Below are positions 192-58,895 of a stretch of 64,000 nucleotides of DNA, one piece after another. Source of the DNA: Anthoceros angustus (taxonomy: Eukaryota; Plantae; Anthocerotophyta); NCBI GenBank assembly GCA_010909165.1, contig MU008150.1, forward strand, positions 434,001 through 498,000, read 5' to 3'. Made by a program: the position numbers and the translations under genes. Numbering within the stretch: position 1 is the stretch's first letter; every line of letters starts with the position of its first letter. The notes under the pieces are model-generated. The model saw only the letters and a program-made list of their open reading frames with translations, had not been told where the DNA came from and searched no databases.

Positions 192-395
192 CACTACAAG
201 GAGGGGCTACCTTTTACAAATGGGTCTAAGTTTAGTTAGAGGAAACTACAACACTCTTACTACAGCTCAAAGCCTTGTTGTAAGTTTTTCGAACATTTAC
301 AACAAGGGTTCCTAACTAATATGATGTGGCATGGATTTTACAACAGGGGTTTGTTGACATGGCATGTTGACACGAATTTTACAACCGGGGTCACC
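192..395 (+). mobile_element. CACTA (En/Spm)-like left terminus with subterminal repeats, truncated
   Basis: CACTACAAGG at 192-201, followed by repeated TTT(T)ACAA..GGG motifs (~212, ~296, ~336, ~377). The same motif follows the CACTA end at 24844. Confidence 0.6.
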
Positions 396-409
396 ACCAA
401 GCAACCTTA

Positions 410-2277
410 CCCATTGTATGGAGAGGGGAAGGGGTAGGAGGATCCTGATGAATTTGTTGAGCGTTTTGAGCAGCTGACATTTGCAAACCAGGAAGCGGGT
501 GATGCACAGATTCAGCTGTTCTACTGTGTTCTTCGGGGAGGACCAGCAAAGTGGTATAGGCGCGAATATCTCAAGTCAGCCACACCTCCAGCCACCTTTG
601 AAGAGTTAAAAAGCGCCTTCTGTGAAAGGTTTAGGGGGCTCGACGTGGAGGGATATGTGTTGTCCCAACTTGAAAAGTCAGAGAGGAAGGAAGGAAACCT
701 TGCAAGCGATGTTGAGAGGTTTCAGCCACGCGATCGGGTGGTCCTCATTCGAGCTGCTGCAATACGGTGGTTCGCTAAAGGCCTGGGTTCTAAGATGGGG
801 AGACACGTAAGGTTGCAAGCGGAGAAGAGTTTGGGCAAGGCTATCAAGGCAGCGCTAAATTATAAGGAATCTAACCCGCAGGATATAAAGAGAGCTAGAA
901 AGGACAGGAGGAAGCCCAGGACAGGAGGAAGCCCAGGACAGGGAAAAAGAGAAAGGATTCCTCATCCTCCTCGGAAGAAAGTTCATCAGGTGAGGAGAGT
1001 TCCACAGAAGATTCCACAGAGAGTTCCACAGAGGAAGAAACAAGTGACAGCTCGGAAGAATCGTCAGATGAGGAGCGCGCCAGACGGAAAAAGAAGAAAA
1101 CAAGGGGTGAGGGGGAAGGAAGGGTCGCATACGGGACAACAAGGAACTGGCAAGAGCGAAACAAGAGGCGTTGTATGCAAAAAAAGATGCGGAGCAGGCG
1201 AGAAGGGAAGCTGAGGCGGCAGCCAAGAAAGTGGAACAACAGGGAAACAAGATGGAGGAGATGATGGCAAAATTTGAGAAATTCCATCTCAACGCGGTGA
1301 AGGAACACGAGAGAAGGAGAGCTGCCACGAATCCATGGGCTAACCTCTTCTGTTCAACATGTGGGCAGCAGGGTCACTCCAAGGCTAACTGCCCGACAAC
1401 AAGAGTGCAACTGCTCGGATATGAGGAGGAAGAGGAAGATACCCCTGTGGAGGATACATATCAGATTCAGGAAGTACAGTCAAATCAGGTGTACCCGAAG
1501 ACTATGTATCCCTCCAACTTACGAAATTCCGCAGGCGTAGGCGTTCGTAATCAGCTGGCGCGGAGTAATAATCCGATGGGCACTGTCCTGTGCTACAACT
1601 GTCGCAACCTTGGACACTATGCGCATAGCTGCCCTTGGCCAACCCGTCAGGGCAATGGAGATTTCGATAAACTGTGTGAAGATTGCAAGCAGCAGGGGCA
1701 TTTGGCAGGAAGCGTACTTTGCCAAAACCCCAGAAAAACAGTCAGGATCGCGCAGCCACCAGTGACGGGGGTTCAGCTGGCTCCGAGCCAAGGTTCCGTG
1801 CCTGCCATGCATGTAGAAGACGCGTTGATGGCTGTATGGGAGGGCGCCGAGATTAAGACCCTAAAAAGCTTAGAGGGTTTAGATGCCATGGATAATGATT
1901 ATTATGGGGAGGCATCTGCCATGGTCGTCAGAACGCGGAGCTCAAAAGCTAAGGAGAAGAGGCGTGGGGGAAAGAAAAGAAGGAAGGAGGTAGATACGAC
2001 CACAGGGTCGGATGAAGGGGAGCGTATCTCGGCCGCGTCAAGCGAGGAAATGTCAAAATTTGCAGAAACGGCGTTCGGAGGTGGAGCGGACCCAAGCGCA
2101 TCCGGTACTTTGGCGGACGAACCAACCAGGCAGGGTGGAGGTACGTGTGAGATACAGAGTGTTCCAAATGGCGAGGGTGGAAATTCAAACCAGGGAAAGG
2201 AATTCCCAACGGACGTAGTCGTAGAAACTTTACAAGCTCCCGCAGGAACTGCCGAACAGGATAAAAATGGGTTATGA
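410..2277 (+). mobile_element. Ty3/Gypsy gag region, degenerate, no LTR visible
   Basis: EDPDEFVERFE...KWY...TFEELKSAFCERF gag motif with a stop at 435-437 and frameshifts. Zinc knuckles CSTCGQQGHSKANC, CYNCRNLGHYAHSC and variant CEDCKQQGHLAGSVLC in ORF 1171-2277. Confidence 0.8.
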
Positions 2278-5200
2278 GTGTTGTTGTCCCCCTCTGAACC
2301 CATAAGCTCCTCATCGTCGTCATAGAGAGTCACCATGGAAGTGTCAATGGGCTCGTCAACTTGAACACCAGAGATAGAAGAAGAGTCCTCAGTGTGTGCT
2401 TGTGTTTGTTGAAGGTGACGTTGAAGTAGAATATCCTCATGGAAAATCACACTTCGAGAAATGGTCAGCGATCGAGAGGCAGGGTCAAAAAGTTTGTATC
2501 CCTTCACGTCATTAGAATAGCCAACAAAAATACGTTGATGTGCCTTGGGATCAAGCTTGGTCTGCAACTCAGAAGGAATGAAGGCATATGCAGGTGAGCC
2601 AAACACACGCAAATGAGAGATGCGAGGTTTCTTGCCTGTCCAAAGCTCATAGGGGGTTGTGGATCCCAACTCCTTTGAAGGTAGTCGATTCTGAATATAG
2701 TTGGTGGTGACGAGAGCCTCTGCCCAATAGCCTCGTGTGAGGCCAGCAAACAACAAACTGGCTAAAGTGGCCTCCTGAAGGGTTATTCTTCCTCTCGGCA
2801 AAGGAATTCTGCGCTGGAGTGTAAGGAACTGTGAGTTGGTGCTGGATTCCTTCAGCTTCACAGAAGTCCTTGAAGGCCCGACTTGTATACTCTCCACCAT
2901 TGTCAGATCTTATGATCTTCACACGTGCACCAGTCCTCCTTTGAGCATGTCTCACAAATGACTGAAAACAATCTAGAACTTCACTCTTGTGTTTGATGGG
3001 ATACACTGTACAATATCTTGACCATTCGTCTATAAAAGTGACAAAGTAAGATGCCCCTCCAAAAGAGGCTGTGGAAATAGGGCCACATACGTCACTATGA
3101 ATGGTCTCCAAGATAGCAGTGGCTCTAGTGGGCAGTGTATCCTTAAAAGGCAAGGAATGAGCCTTGCTCATGGCACAGGAGTCGCAAAAAGGCTTAGAAT
3201 CATGAGTGAAAGCCAATGTATCCCTAAAACTCCCACTGTTTGCTAGTGTGGACAAACGCTGAAAGTTCACGTGCCCTAGGCGACAATGCCAAAGGTGCAT
3301 ACTACACTTAGACTGAGCAACATGTGTGGAGGGCATAGGGGCTGACAAAGTGTGAACATCCAGTAGGTAAAGATCATTGTAAGGCTGACCTGAGAAGAGT
3401 TGGAGACCAGTGTCTATACTGGATATGTAGCAACCAGTGTGGTCGAAACATGTTTGACAAGCATGCTCTTGGGAGAGCTTCATGACAGACATCAAATTCT
3501 TTGTCATGGCAGGTACATAAAGTACTCCGGTGAGGTTGAGACTCCCACCACTGGGCAACTTGATAAGGACTGAACCCATGCCCTTGATTGACAAGCCACT
3601 ATCATCCCCTAACAACACGAACTGCTTGTCGTCAGTGGATGGGACAAAAGAGGAGAAGGCATGTCTATCAAGGCAAATGTGGCTTGTTGCTCCAGAATCA
3701 AGAAACCAGCTATTTTGCTGGACAACAACTGAATTGAGGCAAACAGCGAGGATAGAAGGTGTCTTAGCTTTAGCTACGGCCACATTGGACTCTTGGGTGG
3801 CTGACTCCCGCCTGGGCTCACCACCCTTCTTCTTCCTACAGTCCCTCTCGAAATGCCCTGGTATTTTACACCAGTTACAGGTGAAAGCTTTCTTCTGTGT
3901 GCCTTGCTGGCTTGTAGGAGATTGGGACATGCCTCGTCCTCGGCCACGTCCGCGATATCCACCTCTCCCCCTTGAAGCAAAAAGTACTCTGTCGGCGTTG
4001 TTGCTTGAAGAGCCTTTATTCTTGTGAAGAGTTCTTGAGCGCTCCTCTGCCAGCAGGGCTCCAAGTACTTCCTCCAAGGTCACAGCAGGTTGATTGCCAG
4101 CAGTTGTTGCTTGAACTGCAGCTCGTATGGTGGCATTCTGTGAGCAAACCAGCTGGCTGTATGTGTCCGGCAGAGAGGCAAGAAGGCTAACCGCAGCCTG
4201 AACCTCTGTTAAGACAGTACCACAACAAGCCAAATTAGCCCTCAAGGTCCTAAATTTGTGAATGTAGGCCTCAACAGGCTCATTGTCCTTCATTCTCAGA
4301 TTTAAAAAGTCACGATATGCGTGCACCATCGAGGCTGAGCTTTTATCTTCATATATGAGTTGAAAAACCTTCCACACAGCATTGGAGGTTGCTGCTCCTA
4401 TAGTGTGTGGCATCATGGTCCTGTCTAGGGCTACGATTAGTATTGATCGAGCCCTTCTATCCTTACGCTGCCAAGCTAGGACGTCCTCGGGAGGAGTTGT
4501 GGGGATGGCTACAGTGCCATCCACAATAGACATTAACTCATTTTCTTCGAAAATTTGCGTAAGCCTCATGGACCAAATTGCATAATCAGTCCCATTAAAC
4601 CTATCTTTGTCCCTAAACTCAATCTTAAGAGGAACAACAGCAGGAGGTGTTACAGGAGGTGGAGGAGGATTAGCTGCCATGCTTGCAAGAACTTGGTTGC
4701 TAGTCAACCTGAAAAGAGACTTGGTCTGACGTAGCAACCTAGCCTGCACAGCTTGAAGGGAGAAGTCATGAGGTAAGTACTCATCAGACTCCGAATCCGA
4801 ATCATAAAACAGGAAAGACAAATCAAATGTGTTGTACTCCCCGGATTGCATTCAGGAAGGCTCGCTCAGAGGACTGAGGAAAGACAACGACAAGACATTG
4901 AAACCCCAGGTTCAAGACTCAAAGCTGAGAGGTGGTCTTGGCAAATCTCATGAAGCATCTGGATGGATTCGGCAAGGCAATCAATCAGCTCCTTCTGTGC
5001 AAGCATGCGTTGCAGATTGTTGACTAGCGGACGAACGGAAGGTCTTGAAGCGTTGCAGTTTGAAGACTCCACTCCAGTTGTCCTCGGAAGCGGGCCAGCA
5101 ACTGGTCGAATGTGTTGTGGCCGAGCGTTTCTTGGGGTGCAAATCCTGGAAGCTTGTCGTTGGTGTCTCAGCTGTGATGAAGGCGAAGATCTTCCGGCAC

Positions 5201-5675: not shown

Positions 5676-7229
5676 CTGTCCATGAATCTGTCCGCATTGA
5701 AGTCCATGGGCTGGTCCCACACTTTCCCATTTCTGGCCATTGCCCACATGTTGACGAATAGGGCAGTGTTGGCTGGAATGTGAAAGCCAGCAACGTGGCA
5801 AGACTCGGTGGAGCAATGAGGAATAAGAGAAGGCACAAGAGGATGTAGACGGAACGTCTCTTTCACTACCGCCTGAAGGTAAGGAAGATTATCAATGTCG
5901 TCCTCGGTTACCAGGCGATCCCTCCCCACAACAGCATCCATCTCTTGTTGGGCCTTTTCCAGTTGCTCTGGATGTCTCAGCAACTCTGCCAAAGCCCATT
6001 CCGCAGCAAGGCTGGAGGTGTCCGTCCCGGCATTGTACCTGTCCTATTAGACACAAGATTGAAAGACACATTGTTATCTGCATCCGCAGCAGTCAGACAA
6101 AAGCATTCGCGAAGATGGCAAATGGCCTTCACAAACACCATTTCCCAAGCCAGCTGGCAGGAGGAGATGCATGCACATACCAAAAGAATGCCCTTTATCT
6201 CCCTGTCTGTCATGTGATCGGCTCCATTCTCCCTTGGCAAAGTGAGCATGACATCCAAAAAATCCCGCGCATGATCACCGCTGTTTGGCTCACAGCTCTG
6301 CAGATACTGCCGGTGCTCATCCATGACCTTGTCCAAGAAAGCATCCATTCGGCTATGGGCTGCTTCCATCACCCCCTTGTAGTTTTTTCACTCTGTCCAG
6401 AAAGCCCAGATATGGGACATAGTCCCCGATGAAGGGGAGCACAGCCAAATGAAGAATCTCCTCAACCAGAGCCTTGAACTGCAAAGCCTGCACTTCCCAA
6501 AACACAAAACTTTCAGGCAAGCCCAAGATCTCCATTTCCACTCCGAACCTTGAACTGCAAATCCAGCACTACCCACAACACAAATCCTGCGACCAGTACT
6601 CTTGCCAGACCATGCTACTTCTCACAGTCGCTTGAACACATTCATCTGCTTACCTGCTCGGTGTCGGAGACGAACGACTCCGACTCCGACTCCGACGTTC
6701 CTCCGTACAACTCATGATCAGCACGTCGGATGTCCCCCCATATGGATTTCACCATAGCCGCATTCTCCTCCTACCTCACACCCTGCGCCTGCTGCAGTCG
6801 CTTGGGGCCCAGGACCTCAGTGATCATGATTCCCCGCAGCCGCTTGGTGTGCTTGGTGTAGGGGCTGTAGCCCAAAGTGTCGTCCTGGTATAGTAGGTGA
6901 TTTTTCGCAGAGTGGAAGGGGCGGGAAGCGAAGATGTGGTCTTTGTCCCTGAGGAACAGGCGGGCCATTTCTGGGGAGTCGACTGTCACTCCCAATCGTG
7001 ACCCCAGCCGGAAGCTCACGATAGGCCCGTACTGCCTGGACAGCTCGCTCATCACCTGGTGGGGAAGCTTTGCGGAATTCATGAAAATGGGCACCAGGAT
7101 TCCCAGCACGGGCCATCCTGGAGGGCCTGGAGGAAGCCTTGACTTGCTGGGGCCCGGATTCAACACCCTCCTGGTGTACAGCACAGCCAATGCCAATGCC
7201 GAGGCCAAGACAGCCAAAATGAGCCACAT
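5676..7229 (-). pseudogene. Cytochrome P450, CYP71 clan (A-type), disrupted; heme-binding exon absent
   Basis: TM anchor, LPPGPPGWPVLG, C-helix region, AGTDTSS, KETFR and FNADRF. In-frame TAG at 6771-6773, +1 shift in a G run at 6372-6376, GT donor at 5675 followed ~90 bp later by a Copia LTR. No FxxGxRxCxG seen. Confidence 0.88.
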
Positions 7230-15251: not shown

Positions 15252-15331
15252 CTCGATTTCTTTACTTCGACCTAGAAGGGGAATAGGAGACCTCGATTTC
15301 TTTACTTCGACCTAGAAGGGGAATAGGAGAC
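15252..15331. repeat. Perfect 2 x 40-bp tandem duplication
   Basis: CTCGATTTCTTTACTTCGACCTAGAAGGGGAATAGGAGAC at 15252-15291 and 15292-15331. Confidence 0.95.
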
Positions 15332-16030
15332 TTTATTATAGAAAAGGGATGGGAAAGACCCATGCACCCCAAAAACAAAGGGGGAAAAACCCAACGCAGA
15401 GCACCATGCAAGGGGACTAGCCCCATGATCTCGCATCTCAAAACTACCAACCGCCCGAAGAACTTCGTGGTCAGGAATGTGAAAAGGCCTACTTACCACC
15501 GATGTCGAAGAAACCGCATCTCCCGCGGTCGCTGTCGTTCTGTACACTACATTGGCCAACGCCCTCTGCAGAGCGATGGAAACCCTCTGCCAGATGAAAG
15601 CAAAAATACTAGAAAGGAGGAGACCAACCCATTCTTGCAGCTGTGATAAGCCTTAGCGCAGGTCTTGACGAACTTGGAGAAATCCTTGCCCATGGCTCCA
15701 TGAGTCTAGATGGCAAGGGGGACGAAGGTGTGCCCATCCTGCATAAGAGAGTACTTGTGGACGTTACCCGTTGCGCAAAGAGAGAGAGCCCAGCTCCCTA
15801 AGAAAGCCGCTGGCGCAGAGGCCTCCATGGCCAACAAACTGGTGCCCCCAAAAGCGACGGGAAGGAACACCTGCCGCTTTGCAAGATCCCCAACCGCACA
15901 CTCTAAAGTACCTGGGCCCGATGATGTCGCCTAAAACCTGCATAAGCTGCTTGTCGAAATCCCTTACGTTAGACAAGAAAATCGGAAGAGAACCAGCTTC
16001 AACCTAGAGCGAAAGGGATATCGTAGATTC
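15252..16030 (-). mobile_element. CRE-like (RLE-type) non-LTR retrotransposon 3' part, internally deleted
   Basis: DFDKQLMQVLGDIIGP, AAFLGSWALS, HKYS..QDGHTFVPLAI*THGAMG, QRVSIALQRALA. Homologous to 42060-42955 and 58480-58895. Confidence 0.7.
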
Positions 16031-24843: not shown

Positions 24844-24965
24844 CACTACAAGAAACTCAAGGGTTTTACAACAAGGGTTTTGAACGGTTGCACAGACTTA
24901 CAACACTATACAACTTGTTAAACCCCCATTGTAGAAGCTTTGGTACTTTTACAACAGGGGTGGGA
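24844..24965 (+). mobile_element. CACTA left terminus with subterminal repeats
   Basis: CACTACAAGAAA at 24844-24855 matches the canonical En/Spm TIR start. TTTTACAACAAGGG and TTTTACAACAGGGG motifs follow. Confidence 0.7.
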
Positions 24966-25655
24966 GAGTAACTTAATGTGGCATTTATGCGCAAAGTTGG
25001 TTTCCCCGTGACAAATCAAAGCCTGAAGTAGATAATTCTTGCAAGAGAACCAACAATATAGTTGTCGTACAAGGTAAGCACTTGCATTCATATGAGCACT
25101 TCCTTGGCAGACAACCAAGCTAAACAAATCTAATATGCAAATATGGGTACAAAACAATAACAAAAAGAAAGAGTAGATCACACGTCGTGGCACAAACACA
25201 CTCTCCCCACGAGAACAACGCGCAAATTTCTCACACATCGCTCTCGGAGTCATAGCTTTGGCCTCCTCACAATACTCTTGTATTGCAAATCTAAAGAACA
25301 AGCTGTGATCTGAGCTTGTCCTCTGTGAAAGAATCTATATATACTAGCCATTGGCATATCTATATTTCTAAAATATCTAACATATTTCTAAAATGTCCTA
25401 TTAGCATCAATATATGTCAGAAATATCCTAAGAATACATTATAATATGCTATCAATATGCTAAAGTATATTACTTGTGCTTATCCACTTAACTATTTGTA
25501 ACTGTATTTAACTAACACTAGTAAACACTAAATTAACACAAGCACTTTAGAATGATTAATACTAATTAATTACTTAAAGATAAGTAATTAGATTAATTAA
25601 TACTAATCAAACACTAAACCCAAGCGCTCAGATTAGTGTCACATGACATAACATA

Positions 25656-26109
25656 GTCGAGAGCAATGTAGCACTCAAGAAGGGTGATTTTCGGGTAGTA
25701 CATCCAATCTGTTGGTAGCAGCTAGCCATGCTTTTGACATACTAACTTAGCTTGGCATTTTGCGTGGAGGTGCAAGTTCACGTTGAAGACCGCTAGGGCT
25801 AGGCTATTGTAGAATGTAAGGTTTATGTCAGCTTTTTTCGTGCTATTGTAGAATATAAGGTTTCTGTCAGCTTTTCTCACACTATTGTAGAATGTAAAGT
25901 TCTTGTCAACTTTTCTCACACTGTTGTAGAATGTAAGGTTCCTGTCAGCTTTTCTCGCCAAGACCGCAAGAATACAACGCCCAAGAAGGGTACGCAATAA
26001 TCTCACTGTTGTGTTTTTATGCCAACTTTGCTCGTTAATATCTTAAGTATTGATAAAGGGTTGTTGTCCTGACAAAATTGTTTAAGTCCCAAGGCCCATG
26101 GAAAGATTG
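25656..26109 (+). pseudogene. Intron-containing fragment copied from the mitochondrial S18-type gene at 53984-54312, inverted
   Basis: Colinear nucleotide match across exon tail, intron, exon (NVRFLSAFLAKTARIQRPRR), intron and exon head. The last acceptor AG is changed to AA. Confidence 0.92.
25804..25959. repeat. 4 x 39-bp minisatellite
   Basis: CT(A/G)TTGTAGAAT(G/A)TAA(G/A)GTT..TGTCA(G/A)CTTTT.TC... at 25804, 25843, 25882 and 25921. Confidence 0.95.
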
Positions 26110-26715
26110 ATCATTTTACAGTCATATTTAAATTGGTGAGGTTGTACTTTCTACTTCATTTGCCTACAACTGAAGTACCAACGTCATGATTTCCGGCATG
26201 ATTTCCCCACAACAATATTCTGGGCTTGCTTACCTAGGGAAATAGTTTGGAATGATTGTGATCAACTTGAGGTTTGGCATGATCAAAAATATCTTTTCAA
26301 ATGCCACTGAGTTTTTAGTCATAGCATCTCATGAGATGTTGCTGATCATAGCAATGTTGAAATCCTAGCTTGTGTGAGTATTAGCTTTTTTTTGAAGCAC
26401 ATAAGAGCATCACAAGATAGGAGACAAGAAAAACCGCTTTATTACTTTAATATGAATCATGAATATTGCATAAATATTATACTAATTCTCACTTAGTTTA
26501 TCATATATATGTATATGTACATAGATGACATACTTTTTGGTTATAGAGATTCATAGATGACTTTTCTTATGTACAATGTTAAACTTAACTGACGGTTTTA
26601 TCGACCGCACTGCTGGGGAGTTCGCGCCTAGGTATATGATCGAGCAAATACGTAGTCCAGCTAAAAATTGCCTTCGTCGCCGTCTGCAATCTGCTCCATC
26701 CCAGACGTCGGCGCC

Positions 26716-27156
26716 ATGACTACTCGCTTGAAGAAGAATCGCAAGAAGCGCGGACACGTCTCGGCGGGGCACGGGCGTGTCGGCAAGCACCGCAAGCATC
26801 CTGGAGGGCGGGGTAACGCTGGTGGCATGCACCACCACCGGATTCTCTTCGACAAGTACCATCCTGGATACTTCGGCAAGGTCGGCATGCGGTACTTCCA
26901 CAAGACCAAGAATCAGTTCCACAACCCCATTGTGAACGTGGACAAGCTGTGGTCCCTGGTGCCGGAGGCGGTGAAGGAGCAGGCCAATGGCGCCACCGCT
27001 GCCCCTCTCTTGGACGTGACGCAGCACGGCTTCTTCAAGGTGCTAGGGAAGGGCGATTTGCCCTCGCAACCCGTGGTGGTCAAGGCCAAGTTCTTTTCCA
27101 AGCTTGCGGAGAAGAAGATCAAGGCTGCTGGAGGCGCGGTGGTTCTTACGGCGTGA
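26716..27156 (+). CDS. RPL27A: 60S ribosomal protein L27a (uL15), intronless CDS
   Basis: [42 protein letters not shown]...GGAVVLTA, 146 aa. Confidence 0.98.
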
Positions 27157-29106: not shown

Positions 29107-32100
29107 ATGGTCGACCATGATGACGCTCGCAAGGTGGCATTGCAAGCTCTGGAAAATCTTGTTCAAGTGCGGAAACAGGAAGTTGTGGATATTGAGAATA
29201 AGCTAGCTCGTCTTGAAGCTCACCTTGCTGCATTGTTGGAGTCCTTCTCCGTACCGGTATTTCCTGAAGGTAGGTTTTTATGCAGGTGACCACACAGGAT
29301 ATTGGAAGCTGAGGATCTTCTTGAAGTCAATTGTAGAGATAGATGTGAACTGCCTCGTTTGACTGGTTTGATACTACGGGGGAGTGGGAGCATGTCTGAA
29401 CTTATTCCTTGTGTTCCAGGTTTGGAACGGGATGATGTAAATCCTGTGGAGAAGAGCTGTAGAGGTGAAGTGGCACTCATCACAAGAGGGAGCAGTGACG
29501 TTGCCCCAAGCCTGACGCTGGGGTATCTTGTGGCACAGAATGAGTCACCTACAAGAAACTTGTGCGATGTGACTCGAGGTGTGAAAGTTGATGGCCAACG
29601 ATCAGTCAGCTGAGAGATTGCCGTTAACATTCCGCGTCTGTCCATGATGACATGAATGTCTTAGACTATCCATTGCTTGACTCATGGTGCTTCCGTCTCC
29701 AGGCTTTGAGGCTGCTAGTGCAAGCCCTCGTCAGAACAGTCCTAGAGATGAAGTGGCAGATTTTCTCGGACGAGACTGCAATGAAGGTGACGATCATTTG
29801 ACAGAGGGGGATCATATTGCACAGAACAGATCACCGATGAAGAGGCTGCTTGATGTTGAAACAGGTGTGGAGCAAATTGTCAGTAAGCTCAGAGACAGCT
29901 CTGTCTCCTTTCTGACGAGTTCTTTCAAGTATTTCAGTTGTTGCAAAAGAAGGCAGTTTAGAGGTTGGTTTTAGAACCCTGAAATTTGTGCAGGGATTGG
30001 GAATACAAATGTGGGAGAGCACCTGTTGGAAGTCGTGCCCGGGGAATCTTTGGATGACCAAGAATCACCCTATGAAGCCCTTTTTGATAGGTCCATTCTG
30101 AGTATACAGAAGTTTGGTGAATCTTTTGATCCAGTCAACGTTTGTCATCGGACTGAGTTGAAACCAGAGAGGTCAACTCCACCCCTTTATTTCGATGATC
30201 TTGAGCACTACACGAAGTTCTTTCAGTGTCTTATCTTTGAGGAGGCGATGGCTATAATTGACAAGTTATGTAAAAAGCTACCAGATGTACCACTGACAGG
30301 TTGAAAATATGTCTCCTGCGAAATGTCTTGGTGCAGCATGCATGTTGCTGTTGGTTTCTGGGTTACATTCAGATCTCTCATCTTTACGTCTTCTTTTGTT
30401 CAAAATGGCTGGGTCCAGATGAATGTTGTCAACCCGGCGTAAGCAGCTCCCAGGAGTATTCTGTCTGGAACATTCAAGACAGTTTTCACACTGGGAATAT
30501 TCAACCTGGCTTCCAGTTTTGCGATCTTCGTGTTTATCCTTCAAAACCACCTGAGGGCTCTTCTCAGCATTTTTCATGTGATCGCCTTACTTGGTTTCAA
30601 AAGGGTGACATTATAATGGTTCTGCTTCCCTCCTCAAAGGAGATCCAGGGGCTTGCCATTGTAGGTGAAGTAAACAAGGAAGAGATGAAGCTGAGGACAC
30701 GCTTTGCCTGGAATTCATCAGTTAACCAGGTTCTAACTCCTTGTCTTGGAGTTTGAGATGTGTTCAATAGACGGATAGCTTGTGTGAAAAGTGCTGGTGC
30801 GTTTATGCATTGGAGTGTACTGGCCTCGTCACAAGAATGACCTGCAAGGTCATTCCTTAGAGTAAATGCCTTGTTGGTTCAAAGTCTGTTCCTAGTTTGA
30901 CGCTTGAACCATGTCTTTGCACCCTTACTTCATGCTGACTTTCATCTGTGTTCTGCCAGGAATGTGCCGTGGTGAAGATGCCCCATTTGACTGAGTTACG
31001 GCAGATGCTTATGGCCTTACCTAGAGCTTTGTTGATATACCAACCTTTGCTCCAGCAGCTTATCAAACCAAGAGTGACTGGTAACAAATGGATAATCTCA
31101 CATCCAGCACCTTCTGGCAACAGGGGCTTATTCAAGGGTACTGACTCTTTGGATGAGTTGGTACACGCTGAAAGTCCATTCCTCTCATCATGGGTATCAG
31201 CAAAACTATTAGATGACTCGCAGCTTGGGGCAGTCATGGCGCTTCTGAAGATGCATCAAGGCTTTCTGCTAGTTCAAGGTCCAGCCAGATCTGTCCACTC
31301 GTCATGTTGGACAGTCTTCGTCTTTGCTTCTTTTGATTACATGAATGACATCAAAGGACAGATATCTAATGGGTAATGTGTTGCATCAGGTGGACCAGGA
31401 ACTGGAAAGGTAGTTATCCCTTCACATGCTCTCCATGGTGCTGCACAATGTTGTTGGTAGATTCTGTGATATGAACATAGGATGTGGTCGATTCCACTTG
31501 TGGTGGCTGAAGGTTGTTCCTCCCATATACATACACTGACTTGTATGAATCCTTTTGTCTGCATGTCGCATTCAGACAACCACCATAATTGGTGAGTCCT
31601 GTGTTTCCTTATTTGAGATGGTTTAACCATGTTATGTGATGGGGCCTGATTATGTATCACTTGCACACATTTTCTGCAGGTATGGTTTCAGCTCTTTTGA
31701 TCCACCAGCCAAAGTAAGCGTATAGTCCTACTAATTAGATATTGAAAGCACGGTCCAGCTGGCATTCTAACAGTTTTGTGCTGGGAGCTGCTGTTTCACA
31801 CTGCTAGGATTAGGGTCCTGGTCTGTACACCATCAACTGCAGCAGTAAATCACATCCACCTGAGTCTGATGGATGGGATGCTTGACAAAGATGGGAGGCC
31901 TCTGTCTCTCACATCAGTGGCCTCTCATCAGCTTATATTCAGAAGCGGAGATATTCGACATGGAACAGGGCCAGTTGCTCAAGAAAGGGCTTCTGTTGTG
32001 TGCGCTACATTGGTTGAATGCGGTGGCATACAAGCAGTGAATCAGTTTGATGTGGCTATCATCGGTACGAGCTGTGCTTTCCTAGCATTGGACAATTGAA

Positions 32101-40739: not shown

Positions 40740-41049
40740 TGGCAAGGGCATGGGTGGCATGATATGGCATGGTTAGCATGGCATGGTTGGCATGGCATGG
40801 CATGGCATAGTATGGCTAGCATGGCATGGCATTGCATGGTATGGCTAGCATGGCATAGCATAGCATGATATGGTGGGCATGTCATGACATGGCATGGTTA
40901 GCATGGCATGGCTGGCATGGCTGGCATGGTTGGCATGGCATGGCATAGTATGGTTAGCATGGCATTGCATGTTATGGCTAGCATGGCATAGCATAGCATG
41001 ATATGGTGGGCATGTCATGACATGGCATGGCTAGCATGGCACGACATGA
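40740..41049. repeat. Degenerate (GGCAT)n satellite with a 133-bp higher-order duplication
   Basis: Pentamer runs; block GATATGGTGGGCATGTCATGACATGGCATGG starts at 40867 and 41000. Confidence 0.92.
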
Positions 41050-42059: not shown

Positions 42060-42955
42060 GCATCACTCTCTCTTCAATATCCTTGGGGAAACATTGTTTC
42101 TGTGCAGGGACTTCGCGTCTTGGGGGTACCGGTGGGACCCCCGAATTTTACTCAGGGTTTTATCAATGCTGCTTTGGAGGAGTTCTTGGCCCACATGAGC
42201 GACCTCTCTCAGTTAGGGCACCCTCAAGTGGCATTGGGCATCCTTTCTTCCTGCTTCACGCGTCAGCCAGGGTACCTCACCAGAATGGTTGCTCCCTCCC
42301 CAGTTTTTCTATCAAGCTTGGTGAAGTTCGATAGAAAGGTTATGCCGGCACTTGAGGACATCATTGGCCCAGGCACCTTCAAGTGTGCCGCAGGGGGTCT
42401 GGCGAGGCTGCAAGCATCCCTAGCTGTCGCCTTTATTTGGGGGCACTGGTTTGTTGGCCATGGAGACTTTGGCACTAGAGGCATTCTTTGGGAGCTTGGC
42501 CCTCTCTGCCCCTGTCTTGGCCTCTCGGTTCTTAATCCGGGATTGCAAGATGGCCGTGCCTTCATCCCCCTCGCCATCGAGAGCCACGGGGCCATGGGCA
42601 AGGATTTTGGATGGCTCATAAAGGATTGTGCTAAAGCCTACCATGGTCGACGGAATGAGCTGGGTCCCCCCCTTTCCTCCATGGTAGCTTTCTTTCGACA
42701 ATGGGTTTCCATCGCCCTGCAAAGGGCGTTGGCCATTATAGGACGTCAATGGGCGCGGGAGACGCGGCATCAGCGGCACCGGTCGTAGGTAGGCCTTTCC
42801 TTATTTCTGACCATGACATACTTAGGGTGGTTGGTAGTTTCGAGGTAGACATTCAGGGGGGCTAGCCCCCCCTGCCCTTGGCCCTTTAATGGGTTGTTCC
42901 CCATTGGCTTGGGGTAGATGGGTTTTCCCATCTCTTCATTTTATAAAGTCTCCAT
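42060..42955 (+). mobile_element. CRE-like (RLE-type) non-LTR retrotransposon 3' part, internally deleted
   Basis: GLRVLGVPVGPPNF (late RT), ARLQASL, AFIPLAIESHGAMG, RQWVSIALQRALA, RPFLISDHDILRVVGSFE; 3' end ATAAAGTCTCC. Confidence 0.75.
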
Positions 42956-44165
42956 TTGACTCTTTAATATTAATTTATTTTTATTAAATATATTAAATGT
43001 TTATTTTAAGTTCAAACTTTAATACAATGTTACTTTAACATTAATTTCCCTTAACACCTCCTGGCAATCCTAACTGAACATCTACCTTTAACAGTAATTT
43101 ATTTTGCTTTAAAGATATTAAAGTTGTCCTTTAAGTTGAAATTTTAATGCAAAAGCTACTTTTTAATTTGGAACTTTATTAGTTTGTAGGTGTAGGCTAG
43201 TGGGGGGCACGAGGACCATCCTTGTGGCCCCTTACAAGAAAAGACTTGGGCGGGCCAAATCCTGCAAATCACAACCTATGGCATAGGCCCGCTAAAGCAT
43301 GCATGCATCCCTATACATAAGTTGTTAGGTATAGTCCCTAACATGGACTTGCCAAAGTGTGCGCCTTAAGCCTACACATAACTTGGACCCTAAAGTCCAT
43401 CATATGCACCTGCCCAAGCCTGCATGCACCTCATACCTATACATAACCAAGATTGCGGGCAAGTATACCATACAGAGGGAAAGAAATCAAAGTTTATGCA
43501 ATTATAACACTTGTTGTAATAGTTCAAGAGAATGACCTATTTTTGCTTGCTAGTAAACAATCTTGGTTATTTTACCATCACAAAAAATAAAATCTTGGTT
43601 ATTGATAATGGCATTGAAAACAACAATGTGAAGGTTTCTCTTGAGTATAGCATCAAACATAGTTCGGGCATTGCATAACGAGGTGTCGGGCAAATGATGG
43701 ACACACATGCAAATGTGGTGAACAAGAAGATGCATACCAAGTTTATATAGCTTGCCCTTATAGATAGCTCGAGTGGCTTTTTGTGAAATGTCTGTTGGTT
43801 ATATATGCACACTGTTGAGGAGGGTGAAGAGCCACACTATCGCTTGAGGTCTAGGGTGGTGCCTCAACATCCGGAGGTTGCTCGTCACGGGAGTGGTGCC
43901 AGGAGTCGGGTAGTTCTTGCTGAGGTTGAGCCAGTGGTTTATCCGGCAGGGGAGGAGCTTGAACAGTTGCCTATATCTGGTGTTGGATAGCAACTTACTA
44001 GTTGGTCTCCTTTGTCAAGCACCGTGGAGATAGTGCCGGTCCTGAGGACAATTGATCTATTGAGGAAGCAGGGGACTCTAGTGGTTCAAACAGGATGGCA
44101 AAGCTCAAATCTGTACTGGCTAGAGCTGAAAATTTATCAGGAAGGCCTGGAACTCAGACCTCGAG

Positions 44166-45912
44166 GGATTTTAAGATCCTTGCCCTCTCCCTCCGGACTT
44201 CCTCCGGAGGCACCAGTGCCCGCCAACCACTCGGTCGCCACCGGACTAGGGTCATGCATATGGGATTACGCCCTATGCATAATCCGGCCCTAGGGGGCCT
44301 TATTGTCTAACCCTACCTCATATCCCACACACAATGTAACAAAAAAAAAACAAAAACAACTACCAAACCGCACTTTGGGGAGTTTAAAGCGTGGTGTGTT
44401 TCCTCCACACTCATCAATTCCAGTAGTGGCAATAGCTCATTCTCGAGCAGTCATGCTAATCACAGTTGGCCCCTTACTCGGCGTTGCCTTCCCTGATGCA
44501 ACTTGAGCTTGATGTGCAGCTACAGTAGCTGCATGCAAAATGCAAGCTGCAACGCTTGCTGATAAGCCGGATTAGGAGTCAGCACAATGGCCAGCAAATC
44601 ATTGTTGTCAGCTTCATACAAGTCAAGAGCTTCATCAATCATATACCCCAACAATTGTTCAAATGTATACTGATGAGAAAAAGTTGCACCATGCTTAAAC
44701 CTCACTCTGTTGGTAAGAAGTCCGGGCGAGACCGGAGGTACTGCAAAAGGATGACACGTAGGCTCGGAGGATTTTAAGATCCTTGCCTCTCCTCCTGGAC
44801 TTCCTCCGGAGGCACCTGCCAACCACTCACGCCACGGACTAGGGTCATGCATATGGGATTACGCCTATGCATAATCCGCCCTAGGGGCCTTATTGTCTAA
44901 CCCTACCTCATATCCACACACAATGTAACAAAAAAAACAAAAACAACTACCAAACCGCACTTTGGGAGTTTAAAGCGTGGTGTGTTTCCTCCACACTCAT
45001 CAATTCCAGAGTGGCAATAGCTCATTCTCGCGGTCATGCTAATCAGTTGGCCTTACTCGGCGTTGCCTTCCGATGCAACTTGAGCTTGATGTGCGCCAGA
45101 TGGCATGCAAATGCAAGTACCAGCGCTGTCGATAAGCCGGATTAGGAGTCAGCACAATGGCCAACAAATCATTGTTGTCAGCTTCATACAAGTCAAGAGC
45201 TTCATCAATCATATACCCCAACAATTGTTCAAATGTATACTGATGAGAAAAAGTTGCACCATGCTTAAACCTCACTCTGTTGGTAAGAAGTCCGGGCGAG
45301 ACCGGAGGTACTGGCAAAAGGACAGACACGTAGGCTCGGAGGATTTTAAGATCCTTGCCTCTCCTCCTGGACTTCCTCCGGAGGCACCTGCCAACCACTC
45401 ACGCCACGGACTAGGGTCATGCATATGGGATTACGCCTATGCATAATCCGCCCTAGGGGCCTTATTGTCTAACCCTACCTCATATCCACACACAATGTAA
45501 CAAAAAAAACAAAAACAACTACCAAACCGCACTTTGGGAGTTTAAAGCGTGGTGTGTTTCCTCCACACTCATCAATTCCAGAGTGGCAATAGCTCATTCT
45601 CGAGCAGTCATGCTAATCACAGTTGGCCCCTTACTCGGCGTTGCCTTCCCTGATGCAACTTGAGCTTGATGTGCGCCAGATGGCATGCAAAATGCAAGTA
45701 CCAGCGCTGTCGATAAGCCGGATTAGGAGTCAGCACAATGGCCAGCAAATCATTGTTGTCAGCTTCATACAAGTCAAGAGCTTCATCAATCATATACCCC
45801 AACAATTGTTCAAATGTATACTGATGAGAAAAAGTTGCACCATGCTTAAACCTCACTCTGTTGGTGAAGTCCGAGACCGGAGGTACTGCAAAAGGATGTA
45901 TAACGTAGGCTC
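44166..45912. repeat. Three tandem copies of a ~570-600 bp unit
   Basis: GGATTTTAAGATCCTTGCC starts at 44166, 44769 and 45341. Copies differ mostly by 1-bp indels. Confidence 0.95.
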
Positions 45913-46239
45913 CACGGAGGAACCGACTTGCACAGTGGTCGAGGACGGAAAACTTGTTCAGAAACCGTTACGGGCCATTTCGAGCGGCAGCAGAAGTTTC
46001 ACGACCCAGAAACAGGCACCGGAGTATAGTAAAGTGTGAGAGCAAAAAGTGTCTTCTCCAGGAATGCGTCGTTCATTCTTCACAACTATCCAGTTCTCTT
46101 GCTCTCTTGCGCTTCCACTTCCTGCTCTCTGGTGCTCAATCCTCCGATGCTCAGGCTCCATTGCTTCCATGCGATCGAGACTTCCGAGTGCAAGTTACCT
46201 TGCGCCAAGCGCGCAGCAGTAGAGAGGAGGAGCAAGGCC

Positions 46240-49039: not shown

Positions 49040-50653
49040 AGGGCGGCAACAGAACTGTGCCACAGCATCGACTTCATCCATCTTCGAGCCCAACAAAACA
49101 AGTTAAGTACGAAGTGATAGAACTTGCTCATGTAAGCCGCTACCTTCTCCCCCTCCTTCATTTTTAGCCCACAAAACTCCTGTCTAACGATGCAAAGGGT
49201 CGTCATGTTGTTTACTCGATAAGTCTTGGAAAGTTGACTCCATATCTCACATGCTTTCATCAAGAACTCAATATCGGGGACAAGGACAATATCCCGCCCA
49301 ATTATGAGAAGTGCCCCTACAACATGATACATGGGCTCCCACTTATCTTAATCGACTTGCGAGCTGCTGAGTGGGTCAGGCTCAGGGAAGGTTCCATCCA
49401 CAACTGACCATACACCCCTTGCGATGAGAGTGGCCTTCATCCTGACTCTCTAGACCTGGTACGAAGTACCATTAAACCTGTCTTTCTCCTTCAACTCTGA
49501 TGTAAAGACTGGGCCTGACGAAAGGTGGGTTAGCCTAGAAGTAAAGAATATGAGTAGAGGCCTCGTCGGGTGCTCCTTCCTCCTCAAACTCAAAATTGTC
49601 ATTAGAAGAGAAATGAAACATGCGGTGTACTAGAGTAGTACCTCTACCAACCCCAACGAACTTTGGTTCAATGAGGATTACTGATGTGCTATTTCGTTGG
49701 GGCATGGCATGCTACTTTTCTCCATGGTCTAACCATGCATACTAGGAAGGGTTTGGGCAAGAGAGTAGCTCGAAAGGGGGCAGATGCACGAGTGCCTGAC
49801 CCTTTACGTGCTACCTCTTCATCAAACTTTTCCTCTGTGTACAGTTAGGGAACAAAGCAGTTACACTCTTGAAACATCATGTCTGTTAGGGTTCTAACCT
49901 AGACAGTGTTTCATGTCTTAAAGAACTGTACTGTCACTTGTTGCTGAAGCGACATGTAAAAAGGTAGACCTATCAATAGAGATGGCCAGAGATTTCAAAG
50001 GGCTGCTCGCGAGCTCCAGGGTGCTTGGTACCCTGGCAAGGTTTTGATCACGCTAGGTTCGATACCATCTACAGCTTTCTCAATCTTGTTAGCGGCTCTT
50101 CTAATAGATGCCTGACAACTGCCTTGTAGTGATCAGTGGGATTCAAGCGAGGTGTTCCAGATGGAAGATTGGATGATGAAAGTAGGCACTCCAAACCCCT
50201 GTAGTACAGATTTGGATTTTGACCCCTCTCAGCGCAGCGGGCCTTGAATAGTGTGTCAATTTCTTAGTATTTGTTGATACATTGAGTCGCCCTGCTGCGT
50301 CCAGCCAGGTCGGAATGTTTATCGACAAATTGCTGCAACCGGAATTCAGGATAGTGGTATTCGTAGAAGTCAATCGCTTCACTCATGTAGGAAGATGTCG
50401 AGGAAGGAGCGCATGGCGGTTCTCATGGCACATGCAGTGTCCTGCCTCCCGACGTCGTACTCTTGAACCACTACTATCCCATCTCAGCATCTATAAGAAA
50501 TGGACACACCACAAACACCATGCTTTGATACCATGAACAAAACGGGAGAGCAAGGGCTCGACCAAAAACATGTATATTAGAATAATAATAATAATACAAT
50601 CAGAAAGTCTTATTAAGTAGCCTATTTACACAACGCTTCATAGTCAACTAACA
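49040..50653 (-). mobile_element. Second Copia 5' fragment: ~120-bp LTR, PBS, decayed gag
   Basis: TGGTATCAAAGC at 50522-50533 abuts LTR 50534-50653 (TGTTAG...TTCA). ELKEKDRFNGTSY, VWSVVDGT and LKMKEGEKVAAYMSKF are paralogous to the gag at 4.2-4.7 kb. Confidence 0.75.
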
Positions 50654-50948: not shown

Positions 50949-51917
50949 TCAGGACCTTTCACCCCTCGGTGTGGCCCACTCCACTCGCAAGATGAGGTTG
51001 TCATAACCATAACCATCAAGTTTGTCAATTGCTAGTTTAGCATCATCCCTGCATTCAACAACGTAAAATACACTCATTGATTAGCCAGCACAAACACAAT
51101 TTCTAACCGACGCTCAAAACCAAGTACTAGAAACTTATCTTACATACCTGTTCACAAAATTGATAAAGGCAAACCCTCTGCTCACGCCTGTGTCACGGTC
51201 AAAGGCAACATATGTGCGAGAAATAGGCCCAAACGGCTTGAACAACTCTTGCAAATCCTCCTCCCTAGTATCCTCTGAAAGATTGGTAACCCTAATGGAG
51301 TGATCATCCTTACCCCTCCTCATGCTCTCTCCCGCGTTCTTGGTGCCACCCCTCATGCTTGGAGGTACATAGGAACCCTTGCTGCCACTAGCAAGGCTTG
51401 GTGTTGAAAATGCTCCCAAATCATCATCGCTAGGAAGCTTATCTCCCAAAGTGAGGCCTTTGGTAGCTGTAAACTCTTTGAAGGGACACTTGGCGGTCCA
51501 ATGATTGCCTTTCTTCCCACAAGTCCTGCAAAGAATAAGCGGTGTATTCCCTAGAGTGGTAAGATCTCCGGACTTCTCTACTGGGTTTGAAGTACCGGTT
51601 AGCCTTGTCTGCTCCACAAAGATCTCCTCCTTCGACACCACGGTGAGGTTGTCTGATGCTTTCTGCCCCTCAGCATCACCAAACGTCTTCAATTGGCGCC
51701 GCCTTAGCACTCCCGGGGTTAGCTTTATCAACATCTTTGTGACTCGGACCGTTTTCGTGACCTTAACGACCATGCCGTCATTGTTTCTATACCACTCTGT
51801 GATCACCTTAATGCCCTTTTCATCAGGCCCGACCACTTGCATTGGAGGCAACACTTCATCGATCCCATGGTCGTCGTCCTCGACATCCCCCCACTTGAAA
51901 TTTCTTTGATTTTCCAT
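50949..51917 (-). CDS. eIF3g: Translation initiation factor eIF3 subunit g, 2 coding exons
   Basis: FKWGDVEDD, CRTCGKKGNHWTAKCP, YVPPSMR, RRM IRVTNLSEDT...RGFAFINF; intron 51049-51147; last exon LDGYGYDNLILRVEWATPR. Confidence 0.95.
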
Positions 51918-52030
51918 GTTTCACAAAGTGTACATGAATAATGATTTGGACAACCGCTTCTTTACTATGGACAAACAAAAGAACAACATTAGAGAGACCG
52001 AAGTGCTCGGTTCACACACCTTGCGCCTCT

Positions 52031-53088
52031 AGCACAAACACAATTTCTAACCGACGCTCAAAACCAAGTACTAGAAACTTATCTTACATACTGTTCACAA
52101 AATTGATAAAGGCAAACCTTCCGCTCACGCCGTATCACGGTCAAAGGCAACATATAAGCGAGAAAATAGGCCCAAACGGCTTGAACAACTCTTGCAAATC
52201 CTCCTCCTAGTATCCTCGAAGATTGGTAACCCTAATGGAGTGATCATCCTTACCCTCCTCATGCTCTCTCCGCGTTCTTGGTGCCACCCCTCATGCTTGG
52301 AGGTACATAGGAACCCTTCTTTGCCACTAGCAAGGCTTGGTGTTGAAAATGCTCCCAAATCATCATCGCTAGGAAGCTTATCTCCCAAAGTGAGGCCTTT
52401 GGTAGCTGTAAACTCTTTGAAGGGACACTTGGCGGTCCAATGATTGCCTTTCTTCCCACAAGTCCTGCAAAGAATAAGCGGTGTATTCCCTAGAGTGGTA
52501 AGATCTCCGGACTTCTCTACTGGGTTTGTACCGCCTTTGTCTCTGCTCCACAAAGATCTCCTCCTTCGACACCACGGTGAGGTTGTCGATGCTTTACGCC
52601 TCAAAGATCACCAAACGCGTCTTCAATTGGCGCCTTAGCACTCCGGTTAGCCTTGTCTGCTCCACAAAGATCTCCTTCGACACCACCACGGTGAGGTTGT
52701 CGATGCTTTCGCCTCAAAGATCACCAAACGTCTTCAATTGGCGCCGCCTTAGCACTCCCGGGGTTAGCTTTATCAACATCTTTGTGACTCGGACCGTTTT
52801 CGTGACCTTAACGACCATGCCGTCATTGTTTCTATACCACTCTGTGATCACCTTAATGCCCTTTTCATCAGGCCCGACCACTTGCATTGGAGGCAACACT
52901 TCATCGATCCCATGGTCGTCGTCCTCGACATCCCCCCACTTGAAATTTCTTTGATTTTCCATGTTTCACAAAGTGTACATGAATAATGATTTGGACAACT
53001 GCTCTTTACTATGGACAAACAAAAGAACAACATTAGAGAGACCAGAAAGTGCTCTGTGTCTACACACCTTGCAGCTCTAGCACAAACA
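52031..53088 (-). pseudogene. eIF3g: Tandem frameshifted partial eIF3g duplicate lacking the last exon
   Basis: Near-identical to 51087-52030, with many 1-2 bp indels and an internal ~100-bp re-duplication at ~52530-52745. Confidence 0.85.
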
Positions 53089-53852: not shown

Positions 53853-55478
53853 TTAAGTGCGGTCGAAATCCGGAGGTCCTGAACCGTTCGGTCCGTTGCC
53901 TGGTCTACGAAAAGCGAAGGGAGCCTGCCCCATAGAGGTGAAGGGCATCAGCCCAAGCGAGCGAGCAGTCTTGATTTCACGGACAATCTTTCTCTGGGCC
54001 TTGGCACTAAAACGATTCTGTCACGACAGGAAACCCTTGGTCAATACATAAAGTATTAAAGAGCAAAGCTGGTAAGAAAACACAGCAATCATCACGTACC
54101 CTTCTTCTGGGCTGTATTCTTGCGGTCTCCGAAAGAAAAGCTGTCAGGAACCTTACATTCTGCAGTAGCCCAGCCCCAGCGCCTTCGGCGTTAGCTTACT
54201 CTTCTACGCAAATTGCCAAGCTGATTCAGTCTGTCAAAAGCATAGCTAGCAACCGGCAGACAGGATGTGATACCCGGAAATCAGACTTCTTGAGTGCTAC
54301 ACTGCTCTCGACTGTATTCTTGGTTCTCTGATACTGGTTCTCAACTTCAGGCTTTGATATGTCAAGATCCTGCAAAGGCAGCGAAGAATATGGATAAAGC
54401 AACTCAGGCCAACAATGTGGTGCTTGGTACGCAAGTGCACAAACGAAAAACAACCGAAAAACAAACGAAAAACGAAAATCACAGACGCACACGTAATTCT
54501 TACCTCAGCCTCATATCTCTGCCCTGGGAAAAAGAGTCTACCAGGTCTGAATTGGTACGGCCTGTCCGGACTCTCCAGGTCGTAAGCCTCTGCGGCAGCT
54601 AAGCCCCTATCTGCTGCTACGCTGATGTCTGCCTCTGTCGCAGGCTCTGGGTTCCCCCAACTGGCCTGGATACTAACATCTTCCTCCTCATCATAAATCC
54701 CACCCGAGGCACCTGACTCATTGTCAATCGCATCTAACTCTTTCAGCAGCTCACTATCACCTCCATCTTTCTCCGCCTTCCACTGTGTCCCCAAGACCCG
54801 GCGCTCAAAATCATCTACGGAATCAAGGAGCCCACCCACCTGCTTCGCTTCCTTCAAGACATCTGCAGCTATCCCACACCCACACTGTGTCAGCTCCATG
54901 CCAGTTACAAAACCACGAAAGTCTCTATATATCAGCTAACCAAGTGTCCAAGCAGCCACACACACAAGCAACCACGTACAAAACGGATTGCACATGGAGA
55001 GATGCACAGTACCTGTAGCTGGCGACACCCGTGTGGACAAAACCTCGTCGGCTCCCGCACCCCGCTTCTTATCCTTTTCTGCGCAGGGGTAGCAGAATCC
55101 AGCAACTCTTTCACATGCTTCATGAGAAGACTACATTAGCCCCACCACCCTCAACGTCTGCCTAAAAGGCCTACCAGCAAGCCTCCCTTCAATCCATTTC
55201 CTCCACTGCCCTTGCCCTCCTGGCGTTTGCTGTCCGTCTTTTCGATCAGAATCTGCCCCCAATCACAAACCAGAAAGAACTTAACAAATCAACCTGGAAG
55301 AAAAGCAAAACACACCGGACCTGGAGAACGGAATCAACAAACCTCGGGCGCTGGAACAGTACTCCGCAGCCCGCACGGCCGGGCCAGCGCAGAGCTGATC
55401 GCGTGACGCTGACAACTGGCAAGCTCGAGCCACAGACAAGAGACCCCTCCTAGCCGGGCCTGTCACCGCGCCAGCCAT
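53853..55478 (-). CDS. Nuclear-encoded mitochondrial ribosomal protein S18-type (bS18m/mS40-like), multi-exon
   Basis: Presequence-like N-terminus, acidic linker, RPYQFRPGRLFFPGQRY, ALKKSDFR|NVRFLTAFLSET...|FSAKAQRKIVREIKTARSLGLMPFTSMG (S18 core); stop at 53853-53855. Confidence 0.88.
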
Positions 55479-58479: not shown

Positions 58480-58895
58480 AGACACCCTAGAGACATGGGA
58501 AAATTCATCTACCTTAAGTAAAGGGGTATGAACCCTTAGGAGGGCACCAGACCACGGGGGACTAACCCCGCTGTCGCTAATCTTGTAACTGCCTACCGCG
58601 TCAAGGATATCAAAATCGGGGATACGAAAGGGCCTACCCACCAAGGTCGGAAGCCGCCTCAGGCTTGCGTCCGTCTGCAGCTGGCCAATGCCTGAGCGAT
58701 GGACACCTGCTGAGAAAGCCACGATACATGAAGGAGGGAGGCCAACACCATTCCTGCGGCTGTGGTACTCCCTGGCACAGGTTTTCAGGAACCTAGAAAA
58801 GGCTTGCCCATGGCCCCATGGGTCTCGATGGCGAGGGGGATGAAGACGTGCCCCTACTGCATAGGAGCATAGGAGGGTACTTATGAACCTTCGAT
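58480..58895 (-). mobile_element. CRE-like non-LTR retrotransposon 3' fragment, 5'-truncated
   Basis: VHKY..MQ*GHVFIPLAIETHGAMGK ... GRPFRIPDFDILDAVGSYK. Confidence 0.7.

Follow-up and report, generated by a model that had tools for sequence, protein, structure and literature searches.

The Locus and the Question It Raises

In the 64-kb window, that is, the whole stretch of DNA analysed here, part of a gene for a ribosomal protein of the S18 family is found a second time, 28 kb from the gene and next to the end of a CACTA-type transposon, with one of its splice junctions repeated four times in tandem. The questions are whether such a piece works, either as a splice device or as a regulator of its parent, and how it came to lie where it does. 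The reading that we favour, with a probability of roughly 0.6, is that of an old and inert partial duplicate of the gene, which would have been acquired in association with a transposon and would later have been altered by drift, by amplification of the array and by an insertion.

Identity of the Parent Gene

The parent is a nuclear gene on the minus strand (53853-55477; ATG at approximately 55477, stop codon at 53853-53855) that encodes the mitochondrial ribosomal protein bS18m, as shown by matches to Pfam and to solved structures. The S18 domain is spread over consecutive exons. The exon at 54100-54159 corresponds to positions 9-27 of the Pfam profile PF01084 (Ribosomal_S18) with an E-value of 1.3e-3 and a score of 19.2 bits, slightly below the 21-bit cut-off, and the last exon (53856-54017) corresponds to positions 31-52 of the same profile (E 3.6e-5, 24.2 bits). 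As both flanking exons match PF01084, the 82-nt GT..AG gap between them is a true intron. The solved structures nearest to the last exon are bS18m chains of plant mitoribosomes (9evs_Q and 6xyw_Bq; E 4e-10). The exons were queried individually by reference, unspliced, and the identity of the gene rests on these single-exon matches.

Extent and Anatomy of the Copy

The interval 25009-26109 on the plus strand is an inverted, DNA-level copy of 381 bp of the bS18m gene (53984-54364, minus strand), with an identity of approximately 79%. It comprises parts of three exons and the two whole introns that separate them. Within the window, blastn aligned 25655-25836 with 54313-54136 (79.7%, E 2e-39) and 25925-26109 with 54164-53984 (79.0%, E 2e-39), in both cases inverted and colinear, and an inverted-repeat finder recovered the same two arms as well as a further pair, I4. 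A sequence-only reading of the window had described 25656-26109 as colinear with 54312-53984, including two introns. The blastn matches and the alignment confirmed this inverted colinearity, but the true start of the copy lies 647 bp earlier, at 25009, which is 5 nt inside parent exon A.

The first piece of the fragment (25009-25062, plus strand) is the 5′ part of copied exon A and corresponds to parent positions 54364-54311 (pair I4, 78%; blastn E 9e-6). The 3′ part of the exon is found at 25658-25695 (plus strand), with its donor GT retained. It is followed by copied intron 1 (25696-25812, plus strand), which is 77% identical to 54273-54160. Copied exon B, when read from the last of its acceptors (NVRFLSAFLAKTARIQRPRR), occupies 25930-25989 on the plus strand and agrees with parent 54159-54100 at 51 of 60 nucleotides. 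Copied intron 2 (25990-26075, plus strand; 80% identity) has kept its donor, and its acceptor has changed from CAG to CAA. The last piece is a 34-nt copy of the beginning of the last exon (26076-26109, plus strand), where the homology ends mid-exon. Both borders of the copied segment are thus inside exons, in disregard of the exon borders, and the exon pieces show 85-91% identity to the parent.

The fragment was present as a single copy in the 64-kb window by blastn. As its flanks match nothing else in the window, the duplication is confined to the fragment itself. The retention of both introns at 77-80% identity, with no poly(A) tail, ruled out a retrocopy or processed pseudogene, with which the locus shares the character of a partial, dead gene copy, and upheld the earlier description of a DNA-level copy of an S18-family gene. 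An assembly artefact, in the form of a collapsed or misjoined duplicate, is hardly credible, because an error of this kind would yield near-identical sequence, whereas the two copies are 21% divergent and only one of them has the 587-bp insertion and the array.

The insertion splits copied exon A at 25063-25649 and is AT-rich (33% GC). It is flanked by an imperfect 8-bp duplication, AATATAGT at 25055-25062 and AACATAGT at 25650-25657, where the parent has one AATACAGT, and these flanks resemble the target duplication that a later insertion would leave. The ends of the 587-bp sequence show no significant inverted repeat, and sensitive blastn found no similar sequence elsewhere in the window. 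It may represent a decayed hAT-type or other small element.

The 39-bp Tandem Array

The junction of copied intron 1 and exon B is occupied by a 39-bp tandem array of 3.9 units (25804-25956, plus strand), detected by TRF with a period of 39, 86% matches and a score of 222. The array matches itself in blastn with an E-value of 3e-18, and its head-to-tail units fall within the 10-100 bp range of a minisatellite. No 39-bp array is present at the parent locus. Each unit consists of 9 nt of the intron end (CTATTGTAG) and the first 30 nt of exon B. The interpretation of the array as an amplified intron/exon junction, which had been proposed earlier, therefore stands, with the exon share corrected from approximately 27 nt to 30 nt.

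The units agree with each other at 31-34 of 39 positions (79-87%) and with the parent at 30-32 of 39, and several differences from the parent are common to all four. As divergence among the units is as great as divergence from the parent, the amplification is old; the differences common to the four units indicate that it came after some divergence had already accumulated.

It had also been proposed that the four acceptors, 13 codons apart, keep the frame whichever is chosen. The number and the spacing of the acceptors are correct, and the spacing does preserve the frame, yet they are not all usable, since reading on from any upstream acceptor meets the TAG of the acceptor after it. When translated from the first acceptor, the array gives NVRFMSAFFVLL, NIRFLSAFLTLL and NVKFLSTFLTLL, each followed by a stop, and then an open exon. 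Because units 1-3 each terminate in an in-frame TAG in this manner, the last acceptor of the array is the only one to open an exon.

Decay of the Fragment

These features bear on whether the locus could be a functional element, in which the acceptor array would provide alternative in-frame exons for a chimeric transcript, or in which small RNAs from the fragment would regulate bS18m. The exon pieces read from the last acceptor contain no stop, and the fragment shares its orientation with the RPL27a gene 600 bp downstream; however, acceptors 1-3 reach a TAG after 13 codons, the downstream acceptor, that of copied intron 2, has been lost (GACAG to GACAA, with the donor sites intact), and exon A is interrupted by the 587-bp insertion. 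Over 60 codons, the copy and the parent differ by 8 synonymous and 22 non-synonymous changes, with 19 of the 60 residues altered. The resulting dN/dS of 0.73 is the value expected when a copy under neutral drift is set against a parent under constraint, and speaks against function.

The two regulatory roles suggested by the sequence-only reading fared no better. The longest exact word common to the copy and the parent is 17 nt, with no identical 21-mers or 24-mers, so a perfect 21-24-nt siRNA against parent bS18m is impossible. A long-range inverted repeat or hairpin would have its arms separated by 28 kb and at least six genes, which makes a common hairpin transcript implausible. A functional role for the locus is accordingly regarded as highly improbable. 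Judged from its sequence, the fragment is dead and inert, with no demonstrable function today, and the locus is no working splice device; it is an ordinary by-product of plant transposon activity or DNA repair.

The CACTA-Type Terminus

CACTA (En/Spm) elements begin with CACTA or CACTG within a short terminal inverted repeat and carry subterminal repeats within a few hundred bp of their ends. The left terminus at 24844-24998 (plus strand) has this organisation, with a terminal CACTACAAGAAA at 24844-24855 and the motif TTTTACAACARGGG at 24864 and 24947. The terminal sequence agrees at 12 of 13 bases with the terminal repeat of maize En1, CACTACAAGAAAA, as tabulated in PMC3193017 (table 2). The subterminal motif is present in two copies within 24864-24960 and in three within 295-390; six hits were observed in the window against 1.2 expected, and a count of six was reached in 0 of 100 shuffles.

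A second left terminus of the same CACTA-like family, starting CACTACAAG, was identified at 192-359 (plus strand) by its alignment with the 24844 end. The two termini align over approximately 155 bp with a score of 211, compared with 92 ± 17 for shuffled sequence (maximum 159, n = 1000), and the 192 end was the best of 1254 window tiles against the 24844 terminus. Convincing similarity begins at CACTA, with sparse and gapped matches upstream. The En1 match, the excess of the motif and the ~155-bp similarity to the 192 end thus identify the 24844 end, on its sequence features, as a genuine CACTA-type terminus of a repeat family. The terminus pattern had 0 hits in a metagenome scan.

The fragment was correctly placed inside this terminus in the earlier description, but at a distance of approximately 800 bp; the measured distance from the terminus to the fragment start at 25009 is 165 bp. 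The junction between the two follows approximately 10-25 bp after the last recognisable base of the terminus.

The 192 terminus directly abuts a Ty3-type gag/zinc-knuckle piece, identified with Pfam, with no LTR between them. The order on the plus strand (192-2274) is the terminus at 192-390, a Ty3-type gag-like ORF at 438-1211 and a zinc-knuckle ORF at 1171-2274, and the arrangement looks like another junction of a terminus with foreign DNA. A Copia-type piece on the minus strand (1902-4851; gag, protease beta-barrel, integrase and SH3-like domains) cuts into the plus-strand gag-like ORF.

Search for a Right End

An intact, mobile Pack-CACTA element with an unrecognised right end would account for a genuine left terminus with cargo beginning 165 bp inside it, and the 5′ and 3′ subterminal regions of CACTA elements can differ (PMC6379663). 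However, searches of both strands found no inverted CACTA repeat with at most three mismatches on the minus strand over 25.7-29.3 kb and no clustering of the subterminal motif on that strand at any point in the window, and direct reading showed TAGTG to be absent from 26110-26716. Pfam analysis found no transposase domain near the fragment.

From 26716 onward the window contains conserved host genes, namely RPL27a followed by genes for a clathrin-adaptor small chain, a Sen1-like helicase and a kinase, and a long element is implausible for this reason. The RPL27a (uL15) gene is a single-exon gene on the plus strand (26716-27156, 146 aa; Pfam PF00828, E 2e-16). Its protein is 81-91% identical to plant RPL27a proteins, with bryophyte sequences among the closest, and the exact protein has no database record. 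The gene begins 600 bp downstream of the fragment, in the same orientation, and bounds the fragment on the right.

Two right-end candidates were considered and rejected. The first, at 30217-30228, is an imperfect palindrome inside an exon of the helicase gene, and the second, at 50120-50131, likewise lies in coding or unrelated sequence; neither is accompanied by subterminal motifs. The 25-kb element that the second candidate would define (24844-50131) was also rejected, as the interval holds RPL27a, the adaptor small chain, the Sen1-like helicase and the protein kinase. No 3-bp target-site duplication was identified, a right end or an empty site being required to define one. An orthologous empty site was not found, as the nearest RPL27a loci at the protein level (91% in Logan run SRR33208241 and 88% in ENA) match the window in the coding sequence only. 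An intact mobile element is thus very unlikely.

The sequence-only reading had suggested a Pack-CACTA-type capture, and had accepted that this would fail if the fragment lay outside any definable element. The left terminus proved to be real, but no right end, target-site duplication or second copy was found in the window. As the element cannot be delimited, the Pack-CACTA label fails by the measure set for it, although the locus may still be a truncated element.

Origin of the Fragment

We infer that transposon-associated acquisition is the most likely origin of the fragment. The best reading is capture by a CACTA element, or templated repair at a broken one, although the element cannot be delimited. 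By the first route, a non-autonomous CACTA element would have acquired the piece of bS18m by Pack-type capture and would later have lost its right end. By the second, a CACTA element would have been broken, internally or at its end, for instance by an aberrant excision that removed the right end, and the break would have been repaired by copying from the bS18m gene 28 kb away. The copy would then have drifted neutrally, the 39-bp stretch at the junction of intron 1 and exon B would have grown to four units through slippage or unequal exchange, and the 587-bp sequence would have been inserted into exon A after the amplification of the array.

Some observations weigh against a role for the transposon. 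No right terminus, 3-bp target-site duplication or second fragment-bearing copy was found in the window, the ~25 bp between the terminus and the fragment are assigned to neither, and the adjacency to the terminus could be a coincidence. The same observations, together with a donor just 28 kb off on the same chromosome, would fit a small inverted duplication independent of any transposon, in which a break upstream of RPL27a was patched from bS18m by filler DNA or template switching and the truncated CACTA end is merely adjacent. We consider this explanation possible though unlikely. The terminus has the fragment on its inner flank, with hardly any sequence between them, and a chance adjacency needs an element truncated exactly at the fragment start. 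Moreover, the 192 terminus likewise meets foreign DNA, an arrangement typical of Pack-type or deletion-derivative elements.

Filler DNA, or templated insertion, is said to occur at the repair junctions of plant double-strand breaks, from the work of Gorbunova and Levy and of Salomon and Puchta. The present locus would be similar in that sequence from an ectopic site, often one close by, fills the break while the donor survives intact; however, filler is usually shorter, and the junction here coincides with a transposon terminus.

The transposon-associated origin can be compared with captures known in other plants. Gene fragments have been captured by CACTA, MULE and Helitron elements in seed plants, as in Tgm-Express of soybean and the Pack-MULEs of rice. 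The fragment described here is similarly a few hundred bp long, contains introns, has ends that ignore exon borders, and is non-functional and decaying. It differs in that its donor lies 28 kb away on the same chromosome and in that the element is truncated.

The Pack-CACTA elements of Arabidopsis have conserved termini of approximately 150 bp around unrelated cargo, and their excision is often incomplete, so that one terminal piece stays behind, such as 264 bp from the 5′ end (Catoni et al. 2018/2019, PMC6379663). Similarly, a terminus of approximately 150 bp is conserved between copies in the window, with unrelated genic cargo directly inside it, and the lone 5′ terminal piece resembles the terminal-deletion derivatives left by aberrant excision. 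Unlike the Pack-CACTA elements, the locus has one terminus, with no 3-bp target-site duplication or second copy found in the window, and its host, unlike Arabidopsis, is a seed-free plant.

A more specific interpretation, which we regard as quite doubtful, is that the locus could preserve, in a seed-free plant, the opening stage of Pack-CACTA formation, with a terminal-deletion derivative repaired in place by copying a gene at a distance of 28 kb. One window would then contain both donor and recipient, together with a second example of a terminus joined to foreign DNA. Should the same cargo occur between two termini elsewhere in the genome, the capture route would be documented outside the seed plants.

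Implications for Annotation

Annotators should mask the fragment as a piece of a pseudogene and should call it neither an exon nor a second S18 gene. It is one more decayed gene piece beside transposon debris, and a known kind of event. Within 25 kb, the terminus family provides two examples of an end joined straight to foreign DNA, and the nearby donor gene fits a local, repair-based acquisition. Whether Pack-type capture is frequent in the host lineage could be learned from a genome-wide census of these termini.

Other Observations in the Window

A number of other repeats and gene pieces were noted in the window. The eIF3g region (51087-53088, minus strand) contains a tandem duplication with 93-96% identity and an offset of ~950 bp, in which one ORF has the eIF3g and RRM domains and a second ORF has a piece of eIF3g only. 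A tandem repeat with a unit of ~600 bp, in approximately three copies that are 92-93% identical, lies at 44160-45921, with nothing annotated. A dispersed repeat family of ~600 bp is represented at 15326-15928, at 42357-42953 (inverted) and at 58491-58867, with 66-76% identity and no Pfam hit, and is probably an old transposon. At 40755-41047, there is a cluster of direct and palindromic repeats of the CATGGCATG type, comprising a ~160-bp direct repeat (89%) and overlapping palindromes. Finally, an ORF on the minus strand at 6771-7226 carries the N-terminal 112 positions of the cytochrome P450 profile, and represents an exon or a fragment beside retrotransposon debris.
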